DNA of 64,000 bases from the sequence record KY555145.1; one strand, given 5' to 3'. The translations under genes were made by a program, and so were the position numbers. Below, piece after piece: positions 22,224 through 46,722 of this stretch (position 1 is the first letter of the stretch; each line of letters opens with the position of its first letter). Under the pieces are notes generated by a model. It did not search any database. It was not told the origin of the DNA and worked only from the letters and a program-made list of their open reading frames with translations.

Positions 22224-22699
22224 CGCCGCCCTGGATCGCCGCGCCGCTGCGAGTCTGCGGGAACTTCTTCCGCTGGGTTCGCCTGACCCTGGACACGCTC
22301 TGCGATCGCCCTGACCACCTCCAGCGCTTGTCGATCATCGGCTCGGGCATGGCGGCTTTCCCACTGATCATCGGGATCATCGCGATCCTGGTGCATTTCG
22401 GTCTGCACGGGCCGGACAGCGCCGCCGCCCTGGCGACCATCCCGATCATCGGCAACATGGGCTACGGCGCCCTGGCGCTCTACGCCCTCTCCCAGGTGGC
22501 GCTCCTGGGGATCATCAAGGGCGTGCGGCTTTCTGGCCCCGGCGGCGTCAATGTCGAGATCGAGACCACCTCGGGCGACGGCGACGGCCTGTCCGACACC
22601 CACACCACGATCGTCGAGCGCGGCCGGCGTCACGGCCGCGATCACGATTGTGCTCCCAACCCTCAAGCCGGCTCTGGCGCCGGCGCTATCACGGAGTAG
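22220..22699 (+). CDS. Putative holin / membrane protein
   Basis: 159 aa with two predicted TM helices, inside the lysis cassette, GTGA overlap. Confidence 0.55.
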   Translation: MTPPWIAAPLRVCGNFFRWVRLTLDTLCDRPDHLQRLSIIGSGMAAFPLIIGIIAILVHFGLHGPDSAAALATIPIIGNMGYGALALYALSQVALLGIIKGVRLSGPGGVNVEIETTSGDGDGLSDTHTTIVERGRRHGRDHDCAPNPQAGSGAGAITE

Positions 22700-22704
22700 G
22701 GACC

Positions 22705-22878
22705 ATGCGCGAAGGCTTCATGCTGGAAGGCTATGGCGGTCTGAAGATCGGTCCGGGCGGCGGGGCTGACCCGTACACGACCTTGGGCGACGGCGGCTCG
22801 GAAGGCTGCATCCCGGTCAAGGACGACATCGCTCCGGATGGCGGGACCCAGATCATCTCCCCGCTCGGCTACGGCTAA
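22705..22878 (+). CDS. 57-aa Gly-rich peptide
   Basis: ATG at 22705 preceded by GGAG/AGGGA; phage-like codon usage. Confidence 0.55.
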   Translation: MREGFMLEGYGGLKIGPGGGADPYTTLGDGGSEGCIPVKDDIAPDGGTQIISPLGYG

Positions 22879-22911
22879 CACCCTGCGACATAACGTCGCA
22901 TGTCATGATCC

Positions 22912-22940
22912 TTGACAGAACGACGATCTTCGAGTATGGT
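22912..22940 (+). promoter_or_regulatory. Sigma70-type promoter TTGACA-N17-TATGGT
   Basis: Direct match; preceded by a degenerate copy of the phage motif (GTCATGATCCTTGAC). Confidence 0.7.
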
Positions 22941-22943
22941 CGC

Positions 22944-23238
22944 GGCTCTTCGACGGCATCCCACCGTCACCTATGGCTCGCGACCCACCGTTCGCAGGGA
23001 GATGCTCGCGACCAAGGCGGTAGCCGGAACGACGCTAGGCTGCAAAGCCAAGCCTCCGGAACACGCAGCAGCCGGCTGGAACGCTAGGCCGTTACGTCCA
23101 AACGGGGCCAGGACCTGTGAGGCGAAAGCCGAAAGGCCCCACCACCCGACAAGGGTTCACGCGTGATGCGGAAGAAGGACGTCAGTCCTGAAGTGTCTCA
23201 GGTGCAGAAGGCCCGCCGGTTTCCCGGCGGGCCTTTTT
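22944..23238 (+). ncRNA. Unassigned ~290-nt structured RNA candidate
   Basis: Bounded by a promoter and an intrinsic terminator, no credible ORF, many short hairpins including a GAAA tetraloop. Confidence 0.6.
23208..23238 (+). terminator. Intrinsic terminator
   Basis: AAGGCCCGCCGG/CCGGCGGGCCTT stem followed by TTTTT. Confidence 0.88.
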
Positions 23239-23257
23239 CTGGTCTGGAGACAGGGCC

Positions 23258-24058
23258 TTAGTCGACCGCTTCCAGGCGCCGGCGCTTGGGCGCGCTCGCC
23301 GGCAGGGACGGGGCCAGATCGCCGATCTTGCCGACCACCTTGCCGAGGAACACGATCCGCTTGGGATCGACGTCGACATGATCCTTCAGGTCGGCGCTAT
23401 AGACCCGGAACGCGCCGCCCTTGGAGGGACGGGTGACGTGCGCGACCTGCATGACCTTGTCCATGCCGTAGACGAACTCGCCGCCGGCGGCGCTGGGCTC
23501 TACATCGCGGCGGACCACCGCCATGTCGCCCGGCTTGAGACCAGGGGCGAAGTCGTGGATCGGGGCCAGGGCCAGATCGGTCGGCTCGGCCTCGAAGCGC
23601 TCGCGAAGCCAGTCGGGATCGAGGTTCCAGGTCCGGGCGCGCTTGAACTCGCCAAGGCGGCCTTTGAAGGTCACTTCCTCGACCGGGTTGGGCGCGCCGA
23701 CCCCGAAGGTGATGTATTCGGGCGTCGTCTTGAGGACGTGGGCGATCTGCTCCAGCACGTCGATGTGCGGCTTGACGCTGTCGGACTCGTACATGATGTA
23801 CGCCGTGCGCGCCAGCGGCCGGCGCTCGCCCGCCTGCTTCGGCTCCCAGCCCGGCTTGGTGCTGGTGTCCTTGCGCGAATTGCTCTGTTGGGTCAAGTAG
23901 ACCTGCGAGGCCACTTGCTCCTGAGTCAGGTCGAGGGCCTTCCGGCAGGCGGTGATCCGCTGCCCGATGGTCTGAGGATGCGCAAGATCGGCATCCTTGT
24001 GGATCAAGGAACGAGCGCGATGGGGCACCATCGGCTTCAGTTCGGCCACGGCTTGCAT
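23258..24058 (-). CDS. XRE-family HTH regulator with C-terminal S24-like domain
   Basis: TIGQRITACRKALDLTQEQVA...LEQIAHVLKTTPEYITFG helix-turn-helix; C-terminal GDMAVV...GKVVG as in CI-like repressors. Confidence 0.8.
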   Translation of the reverse strand: MQAVAELKPMVPHRARSLIHKDADLAHPQTIGQRITACRKALDLTQEQVASQVYLTQQSNSRKDTSTKPGWEPKQAGERRPLARTAYIMYESDSVKPHIDVLEQIAHVLKTTPEYITFGVGAPNPVEEVTFKGRLGEFKRARTWNLDPDWLRERFEAEPTDLALAPIHDFAPGLKPGDMAVVRRDVEPSAAGGEFVYGMDKVMQVAHVTRPSKGGAFRVYSADLKDHVDVDPKRIVFLGKVVGKIGDLAPSLPASAPKRRRLEAVD

Positions 24059-24159
24059 TTCGTTCTCCTCCGTCCGTCGGGAACCGCGTCATTCGGTGTC
24101 GGGGTAACACCTGACATTTGCGATGGTTCCACGCCGCAACGTTTCCTTGTCGAAATTGA

Positions 24160-24185
24160 CAAAGAGGGGATGTACACCCTCTTTG
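24160..24185. repeat. 9-bp inverted repeat CAAAGAGGG-N8-CCCTCTTTG (operator or terminator hairpin)
   Basis: Perfect arms, overlapping a TTGACA box, between dut and the XRE gene. Confidence 0.6.
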
Positions 24186-24236
24186 GCAACACATCAAGGC
24201 CAGAGATGAAAAAAGTTTGATACTCGACTTTAGGGG

Positions 24237-24920
24237 TCAGGCGCCCGTCGAGCCGAACCCGCCGGCGCCCCGCTCCGTCTCGTCCAGGCTCTCGACCTCG
24301 ACGACCGGCACGATCAGGCACTGTTCGAGGATGATCTGGGCGATGCGATCGCCGGGCTTGATCTCCACGGTCTCCCCGAAGAAGGGCGCGCCGAAGACGT
24401 CGGCCTGCTTGCCGTGGTGGGTCAGGATGACCTTGACCTCGCCGGTGTAGTCCTCGTCCACCACGCCGGCCAGGACCCCGATGCCCTTGACGCCCAGGCC
24501 CGAGCGCGGCGCGACGCGGGCATAGGTTCCCTCGGGCGCGGTGATCGAGAGGCCCGTCGACAGCAGGGCGCGATCGCCGGGGTTCAGGCGCACTGTCGTC
24601 TCGCCGTCGTAATAGACGTCCAGGCCGGCGGCCTTGGGCGAGCCCCGCGTCGGGAGCTTGGCGGTCTGGGTCAGGCGCTTGACCTTCAGGACCGGGCCGT
24701 CGTGCTTCACCTTGGTCAAACCCCTCGCCTCCTCCCAGGACAGAAACTGGACGTCGCGCGTGAACCGCCCGTAGAGAGCGACGTTCTGATCGACGCCTGA
24801 GCGGACGTCCGCCTCGATGCCGGCGCCCCGAAGGGCGTCGGCGAGGGTGTAGGCCTGCTCAGCTTGCGCAGCCCTTTGATAGAAGACGGTAGCTCGGCCG
24901 TAAAGGTGGGTCGGGGACAT
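24237..24920 (-). CDS. dut: dUTPase with N-terminal extension
   Basis: Motifs AGLD, PRSGLG, GVVDEDYTGE, RIAQ, RGAGGFGSTG. Confidence 0.95.
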   Translation of the reverse strand: MSPTHLYGRATVFYQRAAQAEQAYTLADALRGAGIEADVRSGVDQNVALYGRFTRDVQFLSWEEARGLTKVKHDGPVLKVKRLTQTAKLPTRGSPKAAGLDVYYDGETTVRLNPGDRALLSTGLSITAPEGTYARVAPRSGLGVKGIGVLAGVVDEDYTGEVKVILTHHGKQADVFGAPFFGETVEIKPGDRIAQIILEQCLIVPVVEVESLDETERGAGGFGSTGA

Positions 24921-44373: not shown

Positions 44374-44462
44374 TGGAGCTTCGGGAGGGACTCGAACCCT
44401 CATAGGTGTTCCCACCAGCAGAGATTTGCAATCCCGCGCCTAACCTCTCAGTCCACCGAAGC
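44374..44462 (-). tRNA. tRNA-Cys(GCA) with long variable arm
   Basis: Acceptor GCTTCGG/CCGAAGC, U73-CCA, anticodon loop TTGCAAA, T arm GAGGG-TTCGAGT-CCCTC, 18-nt variable region with GGTG-GGAA-CACC hairpin. Confidence 0.88.
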
Positions 44463-44645
44463 ACAAAAGGACCTCGACGCCCGAAGGCCCGAGGTCCGAT
44501 CCGTAACCAGGGGAGGGCCGTAGCTGTCCCCTGACCCTGAACGACAGGTGGCGGGCTTGGTCGTCATCCCGTCAGGCTCGCGGCGCCGCTCGCCTGAACC
44601 GCCGATATGCCACGAGGGCAGTGATCCGCAGGTCCCCACAAATAG

Positions 44646-44682
44646 CAAAAAGGCCACGATCCGCGAGGACCGTGGCCTTTTC
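44646..44682. terminator. Bidirectional intrinsic terminator (3' of GOLLD-like RNA)
   Basis: AAAAAGGCCACG...CGTGGCCTTTT. Confidence 0.85.
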
Positions 44683-44687
44683 GTTTT

Positions 44688-45560
44688 CCGACGGGCTGAG
44701 ACTACACCCATCAGCAATCCCGCTTCGAGGATTATTCCCCAGGTGCGACCCCAGGTATTCCCTCGACGTCCACCAGACCCCTTGCGGTAGTCCAGTCCGA
44801 GATCATCGCCGCCGTTCTTGCGCACCCCGAAGGGATTGCGGGTCTGGCGTTTGACCCATCATGGCGAACTACTCGACAGTTCCTTCCCCGCTGGGCTTGC
44901 GACCCACTCACCGGCGCTAACCGGCTGACGAAGCTCTTCCTATCGACACCTCGCGGGCTTGCGACCCTTGAGATGACTCCGTTACCCGAGGGCCGGAGCA
45001 TTTGGCGACTTACGTCCGCCACTGGACCAGTCTTTGCGTTTTTCATCGAAGCGGGGATTGAACCCGCGACCGACAGCTAGGACGGCTGTTGCACTACCAC
45101 TGTGCTATTCGCAAACCCACCAAGACGTGCTGGTCCAGTTGTTCCCAGAGCTTTTGACCCCAGAAATGCAACACGCCTCATATCTTTCGCCTTGCGGGCT
45201 ACTCGACTGCTCTTCAGGACCCCGTCTCCCCCGACCTTTCGGCCAGGATGCCCAGCACCCCTCGAACTGAAGCAAAGCTCTTCACCGCGAAGTGTCGAAC
45301 CCTGCAACCCAAACGGTTATCCGTACTCCCTAGACACGCTTGCACGGGATAGTCCGCTTGCGACGGACTGGCGGTTAAAGCCTCGGAGTTACCCCGGCCC
45401 CGCCTTGTCTCCCACGGTCTTCAGGTCTATCCCCTTTTGCAAGAGGCGGCCAGCTTCCCAGCCCGGACCCGTCGGCTTCCTCTGTCCTCTTGCGAGGTCG
45501 GGCGGCCTATGGGAGACCGTCCCTGTCACCCCGTCGCCGGGGCTTTCGTCAGAAGCGACG
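44688..45560 (-). ncRNA. GOLLD-like giant ornate RNA (~870 nt)
   Basis: On - strand: GAGTAGCCCGCAAGGCGAAAGATATGAGGCGTGTTGCATT...CAAAAG, a second GAGTAGTT, many GCAA/GAAA tetraloops and 3' GGGTGTAGTCTCAGCCC, all resembling recalled GOLLD consensus; flanked by promoter and terminator. Confidence 0.75.
45043..45114 (-). pseudogene. tRNA-like element embedded in GOLLD-like RNA
   Basis: Intact D arm (GCAC/GTGC), anticodon stem (ACAGC/GCTGT, loop CGTCCTA) and T arm (GCGGG-TTCAATC-CCCGC), but only a 4-bp acceptor stem and no CCA. Confidence 0.75.
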
Positions 45561-45565
45561 ATGAC

Positions 45566-45594
45566 GTTCTAGCGACAGCCCACGTCGTCGTCAA
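45566..45594 (-). promoter_or_regulatory. Sigma73-type promoter TTGACG-N15-GCTAGAAC for GOLLD-like RNA
   Basis: Near-perfect Caulobacter housekeeping consensus on - strand. Confidence 0.8.
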
Positions 45595-45650
45595 CGACTT
45601 TTTACATCCCGGCGCGGAATTTTTTCGACAGTCGTGGATGACGACAGTGC

Positions 45651-45679
45651 TTGACATTCTCGTAGACCCATGCTAGGTG
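45651..45679 (+). promoter_or_regulatory. Promoter TTGACA-N15-GCTAGGTG for tmRNA
   Basis: Divergent from the GOLLD promoter. Confidence 0.7.
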
Positions 45680-45681
45680 TC

Positions 45682-46058
45682 GAAAATCGTTGTAATTCGG
45701 ACAACGGAACTGGCGGCAAGACAGGGGTGCGAATCCCCTCGCCTCCACCATCGACGCCCGGCGCTGGGAGTACGCGACTCCTGGGCAGGGAGTGTTACCC
45801 TGGCGGGCTGCGGCCCGAGCCAAAGGTAGCCGGGCGTCGTTGATGGGGGCGACTAGCTTTCGATTGGCGCTCGGGACTGAAAGACGCAACGGTGGGTGAC
45901 CTCCACATCGGCTTGCCGGTGATCGGGTCAGGCAACAGTAAATGTCGCCGACAATGACAACGACGTCGTGGCTTTCGCCTCGGCTCGTGAAGCCATCGCC
46001 GCCTAATAAGCGGTAGAGGAGCCCGCCGGGAGCTTGGCAACAGAATCCCGGCAACCCC
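45682..46058 (+). ncRNA. ssrA: Circularly permuted two-piece tmRNA
   Basis: Acceptor piece ends AGGGG-TGCGAAT-CCCCT-CGCCTCC-A-CCA (45750); coding piece starts GGGGGCG (45845), giving a G3.U70 pair; resume context AACAGTAAATGTC-GCC; tag frame 45947-46006 encodes ADNDNDVVAFASAREAIAA-stop-stop; 3' GGCAACAGAA motif. Confidence 0.92.
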
Positions 46059-46187
46059 CTTTCGCAGGCGGGAACACCAACAGGCGATCTGTCGGGCGAC
46101 CGATTTCCGATCCGTGTTCCCGTCTTCGAAAGGTGGTCAGGCCTACCCTCTTGGTGTGCTATCCAAGGGTCTGGCCACTTTACAGAA

Positions 46188-46266
46188 CGCGGGGTAGAGG
46201 AGTCCGGTTGTCCTCGTCTGGCTCATAACCAGGAGATCGTGGGTTCAAATCCCACTCCCGCTCCCA
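46188..46266 (+). tRNA. tRNA-Met(CAT), initiator-like
   Basis: CGCGGGG acceptor with C1xU72 mismatch, loop CTCATAA, T arm GTGGG-TTCAAAT-CCCAC, CCA end. Confidence 0.88.
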
Positions 46267-46270
46267 ATGC

Positions 46271-46549
46271 GAACGCCGGCTGTTGAGAACGACGGCGTGA
46301 CAAGCTCGGAGAGAACGAGCACTCCAGTCCGGGGTATGAGGCCGGACTAGCGGACGCCGTAGCGATTGCAGGCGTGACACCCGGAGATAGCGGGACCGAT
46401 TTTCCAGGCTCCATGCCCGGCGCGTCGGGGGCGGACCGTTAATCCGCCCGGCGTCAGAGGATGAGGCTAGTTCTCGGCGATGAAGCTGCGCGCGCAGTGA
46501 GAAAGCCAGGGCATGGCGCTTGGAAAGTCGGTTCGCGGTTCGTCCGCTA
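46271..46549 (+). ncRNA. Structured spacer RNA: two tandem motif copies plus long rod-like stem
   Basis: GRACGCC...GGCGTGACA-hairpin twice; 23/24-bp stem 46395-46418 with 46509-46532; 9-bp stem 46348-46356 with 46541-46549. Confidence 0.55.
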
Positions 46550-46554
46550 CGAGA

Positions 46555-46628
46555 TGGAGATGTCGCCGGTTCGAGTCCGGCAGGTCCCCCAAAAGGAGGC
46601 CTTAGCTCAGTCGGTAGAGCGCTCCTAT
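46555..46628 (+). pseudogene. tRNA 3' half followed by tRNA 5' half (permuted order)
   Basis: 46555-46591 = anticodon-stem strand, variable loop, T arm GCCGG-TTCGAGT-CCGGC, acceptor AGGTCCC; 46596-46628 = GAGGCCT-TA-GCTC-AGTCGGTA-GAGC-G-CTCC. Confidence 0.6.
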
Positions 46629-46637
46629 CCCACCTTT

Positions 46638-46722
46638 GGTACGGTGGCTCGACAGGTAAGGCATCGGCCTCATAAGCCGAGGGTTCGTCCCAATCCTGGT
46701 TCAAATCCAGGTCGTACCTCCA
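46638..46722 (+). tRNA. tRNA(CAT), Met or Ile2, with long variable arm
   Basis: Acceptor GGTACGG/TCGTACC, U73-CCA, TCGGC-CTCATAA-GCCGA, 14-nt variable region GGG-TTCGT-CCC-AAT, T arm CCTGG-TTCAAAT-CCAGG. Confidence 0.88.

Follow-up and report, generated by a model that had tools for sequence, protein, structure and literature searches.

A conserved structured RNA gene downstream of the lysis genes in phiCbK-like Caulobacter phages and their relatives

In this study, the intergenic gap that follows the lysis genes was analysed in a stretch of 64,000 nucleotides (nt) from sequence record KY555145.1 (the window, to which coordinates refer unless another locus is named), which derives from a phiCbK-like Caulobacter phage. 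The gap (22879–23257, about 380 bases) carries no annotated gene in deposited genomes and was found to hold the gene of a structured RNA, which has its own promoter and terminator, is read from the + strand and shares with its homologues in 15 other loci a common core of conserved secondary structure. The family is absent from Rfam and undescribed in the literature, as far as it was searched. The explanation that we favour, at a little better than even probability, is that the gene, present in a single copy, gives rise to a stable non-coding RNA of about 292 nt that folds and acts in trans as a scaffold or decoy, and that its family is one of Dolichocephalovirinae (giant siphophages of Caulobacter and Brevundimonas) outside Rfam. 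Work on Caulobacter, a cell-cycle model, has phiCbK as its standard phage, with a public infection time-course and both host and phage genetics at hand, and a well-defined RNA is a tractable entry to what structured phage RNAs do. Binding of a host factor or ligand by the core would represent a new RNA-based mechanism of phage–host interaction; even if the RNA is dispensable, more than 25 deposited genomes gain a corrected annotation.

The main evidence is comparative. A covariance model (R1; 111 positions, 29 pairs) was built on the structure of the core, a region of roughly 100 nt common to all members. R1 matched the copy in the window with an expectation value (E) of about 1e-23 (Table 1) and found exactly one copy per locus in the 15 related loci; L294, which was left out of model building, was recovered at 37.9 bits (E = 2.7e-7). 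The core consists of three hairpins and a short closing helix, Pa, and reads from 5′ to 3′ A.GG-C, P2, CC-AA(A/G), Pa (GCG), GUAR, P3, N-ACA, Pa′ (CGC), 3–5 nt and P4, with invariant junction bases CCAA..C.G.A and ACA.G. In the R1 alignment, 92.3% of cells contained standard pairs, against 75.0% (standard deviation 1.3) in shuffles and 25–44% in controls with slid partners, and compensatory changes on both sides were found in 24 of the 29 core pairs. Both sides had changed in six of eight pairs of P2 (96% of cells paired), in all four pairs of P3 across lineages and in five of six pairs of P4, where G-U occurs at one pair in seven sequences. Most lineages have GCG/CGC as the three pairs of Pa; L288 has ACG/CGU, and L294 has UCU/AGA. 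The frequent G-U pairs, which would be A-C mismatches on the other strand, place the RNA on the + strand, as does the promoter. A long-range pairing of ACACGC with GCGUG, proposed by RNAalifold, was dropped in favour of the local Pa because the minimal member of the family lacks the 3′ half and Pa covaries in L288 and L294. Helix sequences change freely, and the family-wide invariant bases form runs of 3–5 nt in junctions and loops (CCAA, C.G.A, ACA.G and UGG.A): among 16 sequences, CCAA, C, G and A of the first junction were invariant or nearly so, and the P4 loop was UGGRA(N)(N) in all 16. The insertion P3b is carried by the phiCbK clade and L286 alone, and was found in none of Bajun, L287, L288 and L305. 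Between Ccr10 and Rogue, identity was 88.8% in the core, 69% in the 3′ half, 77–86% in the flanking genes and 61.5% in the small gene gp105.

The first-pass annotation, made from the letters of the window, had proposed an independently transcribed, structured phage RNA that might serve as a protein sponge in view of its duplicated motifs. The structure and the conservation of the promoter are borne out by comparison, from which a discrete transcript would be expected; the sponge argument fails. The repeats are indeed present, CTCGCGACC at 22977 and 23005 and GGAACG(ACG)CTAGGC at 23026 and 23078. The two CTCGCGACC copies are, however, the two strands of P2 (UCGCGA is palindromic), which read UCUUGA/UCAAGA, UCCGC/GCGGA or CCCG/CGGG elsewhere. 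The first GGAACGACGCTAGGC copy sits in P3 and the P3b insertion of the phiCbK clade and L286, and the second, GGAACGCTAGGC, is the P4 loop together with its 3′ strand. The gene is also single-copy in the 219-kb Ccr10 genome, in which the runner-up R1 match reached 15.5 bits. The hairpins that had been named, GACGG/CCGTC, GGC-GAAA-GCC, GGGGCC/GGCCCC and GGAC/GTCC (23177–23188), are real; three of the four keep their pairing by compensatory changes, and GACGG/CCGTC is invariant in the clade. A fifth, CCTGA/TCAGG (23187–23202), is also present, yet it shares bases with GTCC, and neither Rogue nor BL10 conserves it.

Homologues were collected by three routes. An nhmmer profile of phiCbK-clade sequences led to a diverged syntenic copy in Brevundimonas phage Bajun; contigs carrying distant relatives of the neighbouring helix-turn-helix (HTH) protein yielded L286, L287, L288, L289, L292, CcrColossus and CcrPW; and a gapped pattern of universal blocks revealed the copy in L305, a 279-kb IMG/VR contig. 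The 15 loci come from Shapirovirus, Poindextervirus, CcrColossus/PW, Bajun, six metagenomic phage contigs and one IMG/VR contig, and the core is kept across five groups (Shapirovirus, Poindextervirus, Colossusvirus, Bajun, and Bajun-like or other metagenomic phages). In every case, the RNA gene stands after the lysis cassette and converges on an RNR-dUTPase-HTH block. The HTH gene faces the RNA in most syntenic loci; in Colossus, PW and L289, a Ro60 (TROVE) gene is inserted between the two. RNA length ranges from about 150 nt in all in L305, the minimal member, which has promoter, core and terminator only and no 3′ half, to 450–520 nt in L286, L287, L288 and Colossus. No family member was present in the syntenic gap of Domovoi- and Gurke-type Brevundimonas phages, and the plasmid collection gave no match to the RNA. 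Exact-word scans of IMG/VR with conserved blocks of 16–18 nt returned, beyond the copies in known phages, chance matches without other family motifs. In metagenome contigs, the word GGTTCACGCGNGATGCGG had at least 120 matches, none of which was prolonged past about 30–60 nt by nhmmer. Genome-contig matches to the 20-nt junction string GCGACCAANGCGGTANCCGG (L159–L278) were rejected as codons of the acetolactate synthase large subunit for GPGATNAVTG in many phyla; this string is a trap for pattern searches that use this RNA.

The signals that delimit the gene are conserved as well. The promoter TTGACA-N17-TATGGT, already pointed out in the first-pass annotation, has no second exact match within the window, and one sigma-70-like site was seen in 1.9 kb (22500–24400) against 0.2 expected from shuffles. 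In 14 distinct lineages, the −35 element is TTGAC(A/G), mostly with TC before it, followed by a TAnnnT-like −10 element at 17 nt (16 or 17 nt in L305), which occurs as TATGGT, TAGTGT, TAGCGT, TAGGGT, TAGGTT or CATAAT; the Colossus promoter scores 11/12. Hexamers kept at fixed spacing over spacers that are free to vary are the signature of a working promoter. The RNA is predicted to start at about 22947 and to end at about 23238, giving about 292 nt. The strong terminator of the first-pass annotation is likewise in place, and it is the sole annotation in the gap, as a "predicted rho-independent terminator", in the GenBank records of phiCbK, Karma and Swift. Every family member closes with a long GC-rich hairpin and a U-tract, and these stems have 10–13 GC-rich pairs and differ in sequence among lineages. 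A simple terminator scanner missed the site in the window, probably because the flanking A and T runs prolong the stem into the T-tract; from the A-rich stretch upstream, the terminator probably also halts the convergent HTH operon and would thus be bidirectional. In accordance with the earlier view that these roughly 290 nt contain no credible open reading frame, the longest frame (84–85 codons, 22912–23166) starts inside the −35 hexamer. That frame offers the one point for a small protein, as it is present in Ccr10, Magneto and Rogue; against this reading, BL10 has a shorter version, a frameshift divides it in BL57, and Bajun and other lineages lack it. Its substitutions do not track codon positions. 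We regard the probability of a protein product as close to negligible.

Comparison with known RNAs was performed against the 4227 models of Rfam 15, at the gathering threshold and at E up to 10. No match at gathering was obtained for 22850–23290, and up to E = 10 only terminator hairpins matched, at 11–29 bits and far under the thresholds; the same held for eight homologous loci and the minimal member. The first-pass annotation had likewise assigned the RNA to no family. The literature on RNAs of CbK and Dolichocephalovirinae, including the genome paper of phiCbK (PMC3556154) and a transcriptome study of infection (PMC10688885; its supplementary tables lie outside the gene-name search), describes no such RNA. 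ARAGORN predicted five genes in the window and none at 22900–23250, where no tRNA or tmRNA model of Rfam matched either. The T-box and RNase P models gave nothing on the RNA, and the YrlA model (RF02553) did not match it in the window or in homologues. No riboswitch model matched the core at E ≤ 10; the lone riboswitch row was a molybdenum cofactor riboswitch at 18.7 bits (threshold 36), on the − strand of the terminator hairpin. The cyclic di-GMP riboswitch class c-di-GMP-I was also considered and rejected: the similar strings GCAAAGCC..CUCCGG fall in P3b, which is missing in most lineages, and no gene follows on the same strand.

According to the favoured explanation, the RNA would be transcribed separately by host RNA polymerase from its sigma-70-like, host-type promoter and would act in trans through its fold, offering a specific three-dimensional site to a protein, another RNA or a ligand. 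Since the invariant bases lie in junctions and loops and not in a long single-stranded seed, the pattern is that of an RNA with such a site and not of an antisense regulator. The T-loop pentamer has the pattern U-G-N-R-A, and the invariant UGGRA loop of P4 would probably form a T-loop, with the invariant CCAA/GUAG junction as its docking site: the two G of the loop could form pairs with the CC of CCAA, likewise invariant, and a purine of the junction could intercalate. Such docking is beyond the reach of covariation, as all the bases concerned are invariant. In this way, the RNA could be a scaffold or decoy that captures a host or phage factor during infection.

Several points weigh against this explanation. 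The proposed trans-acting mechanism rests on a conservation pattern in which nothing names a partner. The alignment used for covariation had been fitted to R1, which favours the structure; the same compensations were seen in plain MAFFT alignments. The minimum free energy of the single sequence is no better than that of shuffles on either strand (z = −1.67, with 11 of 200 shuffles folding as well, and z = −1.90); the support for the structure is comparative and not thermodynamic. RNA sequencing of infected cells (X1 and X3) is represented by assembled contigs of 14–28 kb that span the phage at flat depth, from which neither transcript ends nor a discrete transcript can be read, and wastewater runs (X6 and X25) gave 150-nt pieces that are probably DNA; a depth of 7.1 on 23039–23172 in X25, against 2.6 on the HTH gene, is too weak for use. 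In Colossus, PW, L288, L289 and L292, a textbook intrinsic terminator lies between promoter and core (in Colossus at L297 2134–2170, beginning about 7 nt past the predicted start), which is hard to square with simple constitutive synthesis. Either the late operon ends there, past the promoter, or synthesis of the RNA needs read-through. Phages of the phiCbK type have no such terminator, and the leader hairpin of phiCbK has no U-tract.

Other functions of the RNA were weighed on the same evidence. It could be a base-pairing small RNA, a riboregulator of the Hfq type with the terminator hairpin and U-tail as the Hfq site; its own promoter and rho-independent terminator with a U-tail are found in most bacterial small RNAs, and invariant stretches such as CCAAGGCGGUAG and GCCUCCGG exist. 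We consider this rather unlikely: the runs that are invariant family-wide measure just 3–5 nt, the longer ones are specific to the phiCbK clade, and dense conserved structure over 290–520 nt is unusual for the seed type; for the complement of the longest conserved junction, a search covering the window, and not the host genome, found no second site beyond chance. Another reading is that the core folds into a T-loop domain that resembles or binds the tRNA elbow and serves enzymes directed at tRNA as a decoy or cofactor. The RNA may then soak up a host tRNA-cleaving defence nuclease or aid the phage's RNA-repair and translation kit. The many tRNA genes, tmRNA, GOLLD and RtcB in the genome make a tRNA-related partner attractive as a guess, and this role is unlikely; if true, it would establish a new class of phage RNAs that counter host defence or support translation. 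Quite improbable, in our judgement, is an orphan riboswitch-like sensor whose core binds a small molecule and sets terminator read-through into RNA antisense to the HTH gene, an arrangement comparable to the B12 riboswitch and AspocR of Listeria. The minimal member, with promoter, structured domain of about 100 nt and terminator, has the architecture of a riboswitch, invariant junction nucleotides are typical of aptamers, and the downstream gene is always convergent and a regulator at all loci but those of Colossus, PW and L289, which have the TROVE gene in that place. Relatives are reported as episomal pseudolysogens (PMC12195562), which makes a decision circuit conceivable. The terminators are nevertheless very strong and variable among lineages, whereas the core bases available for an antiterminator do not vary; inspection revealed no alternative pairing that is conserved; and in most members 115–350 nt of structured RNA separate core and terminator. 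The failure of known riboswitch models to match points the same way.

A cis-acting or DNA element without free RNA (such as the untranslated 3′ end of the lysis operon, an insulator that separates the convergent operons, an origin of replication or arrayed protein-binding sites) would fit a position at the switch of transcription direction and at the minimum of cumulative GC skew, the palindromes TCGCGA, CACGCGTG and CCGG, and the terminator that almost directly follows the promoter in Colossus-type phages. Compensatory changes with G-U pairs and swaps of GNRA for UUCG reveal selection on + strand RNA, and promoter hexamers are kept over variable spacers, which makes a purely cis-acting role very improbable. 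An origin in particular would leave all flanking transcription running, by inference, head-on to replication; the skew minimum (about 23 kb) falls where the coding strand switches, which explains it, and is no argument for an origin.

The RNA was also compared with known systems. GOLLD and ROOL, large ornate RNAs associated with phages, are similar in being phage-encoded, stand-alone and heavily structured, with a conserved core and lineage-specific elaborations, but this RNA does not match their models, is far smaller (150–520 nt) and has no adjoining tRNA genes. YrlA and its partner Ro60 are similar in that YrlA RNAs are small and structured with tRNA-like T-loop features, and in CcrColossus, PW and L289 the RNA gene lies tail-to-tail with the TROVE gene, which has YrlA-like sequences on its other flank; unlike YrlA, this RNA lacks the terminal Ro-binding stem. 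A tblastn search with a phage Ro60 query found CcrColossus and CcrPW as the sole Caulobacter phages and no phiCbK-like phage, Bajun was not among the matches listed, and TROVE had no match in the window. Dependence on Ro60 was thus ruled out, given that phiCbK-like phages carry the RNA yet have no Ro60 match. The UGGRA loop resembles the double T-loop and tRNA-elbow modules of the T-box stem I distal region, the RNase P specificity domain and tRNA, as a pattern only; partners for intercalation and pairing could come from the invariant, purine-rich bases of the junctions. OOP RNA of phage lambda overlaps and pairs with the cII message. The RNA described here has in common with OOP and other short phage RNAs directed at a regulator gene its own constitutive-type promoter, a strong terminator and convergence with a gene of the repressor family, but its size is much greater, and what is conserved is structure and not antisense sequence.

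Table 1. Features of the RNA gene and its immediate surroundings in the window
Feature	Position	Strand	Basis
Inverted repeat TGCGAC-ATAAC-GTCGCA, between gp105 stop and −35	22884–22900	+	unique in window
Sigma-70-type promoter TTGACA-N17-TATGGT	22912–22940	+	unique sigma-70-like site locally; conserved hexamers
Leader hairpin P1, GACGG-CAUCCCA-CCGUC	22952–22968	+	invariant in phiCbK clade
Core (module A), common to all members	22971–23095	+	covariance model R1, 105 bits
Helix P2, inner stem CCC/GGG, loop ACCGUUCGCA; includes both CTCGCGACC copies	22975–23013	+	covariation
Junction CCAAGGCGGUAG; includes Pa 5′ strand GCG (23017–23019)	23012–23023	+	conservation
Helix P3 CCGG/CCGG with insertion P3b (23034–23053, GCAA tetraloop)	23024–23059	+	covariation
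Junction ACACGC; last three bases are Pa 3′ strand	23061–23066	+	conservation, covariation
Helix P4, loop UGGAAC (23077–23082)	23071–23089	+	covariation, loop conservation
Hairpin P8 GGGGCC/GGCCCC, tip GGC-GAAA-GCC (23121–23130)	23104–23140	+	compensatory changes
Small hairpin CGC-GUGAU-GCG in invariant block GGUUCACGCGUGAUGCGG	23160–23170	+	clade-invariant; weakly supported
Hairpin P9 AGGAC-GUCA-GUCCU	23176–23189	+	both-side change in 3/5 pairs, phiCbK clade
Intrinsic terminator, 10-bp GC stem GGCCCGCCGG/CCGGCGGGCC (23210–23233), loop UUUC, then U5	23210–23238	+	GenBank annotation
gp106c, XRE-type HTH protein; neighbour outside the RNA	23258–24058	−	Pfam HTH_3, 28.9 bits

Outside the core, the RNA varies. 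The position of P1 is occupied by another hairpin in other lineages and by none in L294. In most members, 115–350 nt of additional structured RNA extend from core to terminator; as this 3′ half is variable and missing in L305, the core is the functional unit and the remainder an elaboration. Across seven members of the phiCbK clade, the structure of the whole RNA is 95.7% paired. In Rogue, RBC63 and BL10, P8 shows a change from C-G to U-A, and its tip changes from GGC-GAAA-GCC to GCC-UUCG-GGC. By eye, P8-homologous hairpins are present in L286 and Bajun, which also have CGC-GNGAY-GCG hairpins similar to the small hairpin of Table 1. P8 followed by ACCA (23104–23147) in the phiCbK and Rogue clades resembles a tRNA acceptor minihelix with discriminator base and CCA; this element lies within the RNA, and Bajun and L286 do not conserve it. 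The long versions in L286 (2061–2640, − strand), L288 and L294 have an additional conserved block, CCCCGCCGGAYTAGGCTTGCGGGTGTCTG, in common. L286 contains an internal terminator-like hairpin, so that two RNAs may lie in its 520-nt gap.

The 381 bases around the RNA gene are 100% identical to Ccr10, Ccr2 and Ccr29, 99.5% identical to phiCbK and about 81–87% identical to CcrRogue, BL10 and BL57. The gap is flanked by convergent genes: gp105 (+ strand, ending at 22878) is the last gene of the lysis cassette block, and gp106c (− strand, ending at 23258) closes the RNR-dUTPase-HTH block. The 3′ end of the RNA lies about 20 nt short of the HTH stop codon, and only the terminator hairpin is common to both units. 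The inverted repeat of Table 1 lies 11 nt upstream of the −35 hexamer. Inverted repeats of other sequence, read by eye, occupy the same place in Bajun, L287, L289/L292, Colossus/PW and L305. The late (lysis) transcript probably has this repeat as its 3′ hairpin; alternatively, the repeat may be an operator.

The window also contains a cluster of other RNA genes (44374–46722), comprising GOLLD, tRNA-Gly, tRNA-Cys, tmRNA and two tRNA-Met. GOLLD (RF02032) was found in the window solely at 44693–45179 on the − strand (165 bits, gathering score 150), with tRNA-Gly (45042–45115) embedded in it; the literature search found no paper joining GOLLD with Caulobacter phages. The tmRNA is a permuted two-piece form (45658–46097) with the tag VADNDNDVVAFASAREAIAA. 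The genome has at least 26 tRNA genes, namely 22 at 47.8–52.0 kb of the Ccr10 genome and four in the window. Elsewhere in Ccr10 (L307 15113–16345, 6843–9529 and 41485–42033), genes for RtcB RNA ligase, for NadV and NadM-type NAD salvage enzymes and for a GcrA-like cell-cycle regulator were observed.

In relatives, the locus is a hot spot of RNA genes, with Y RNA-like sequences and Ro60 inserted alongside. The gap between the HTH and TROVE genes was inspected in CcrColossus, CcrPW, Gurke and a metagenomic relative (L027 3521–4132, L028 3505–4112, L030 3569–4124 and L289 3655–3722). It holds one to three sub-threshold YrlA matches (30–42 bits, gathering score 69), together with a tRNA in Colossus and Gurke, and its content is probably a phage Ro60/Y RNA module. 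In the gap after Ro60 of Domovoi (L298 1372–2498) and Gurke (L299 1692–2505), three copies of a motif of about 55 nt were observed, the form of which, by eye, is GCCGTCACGCC ... GGCGTTC(C/G)C.TCAG.

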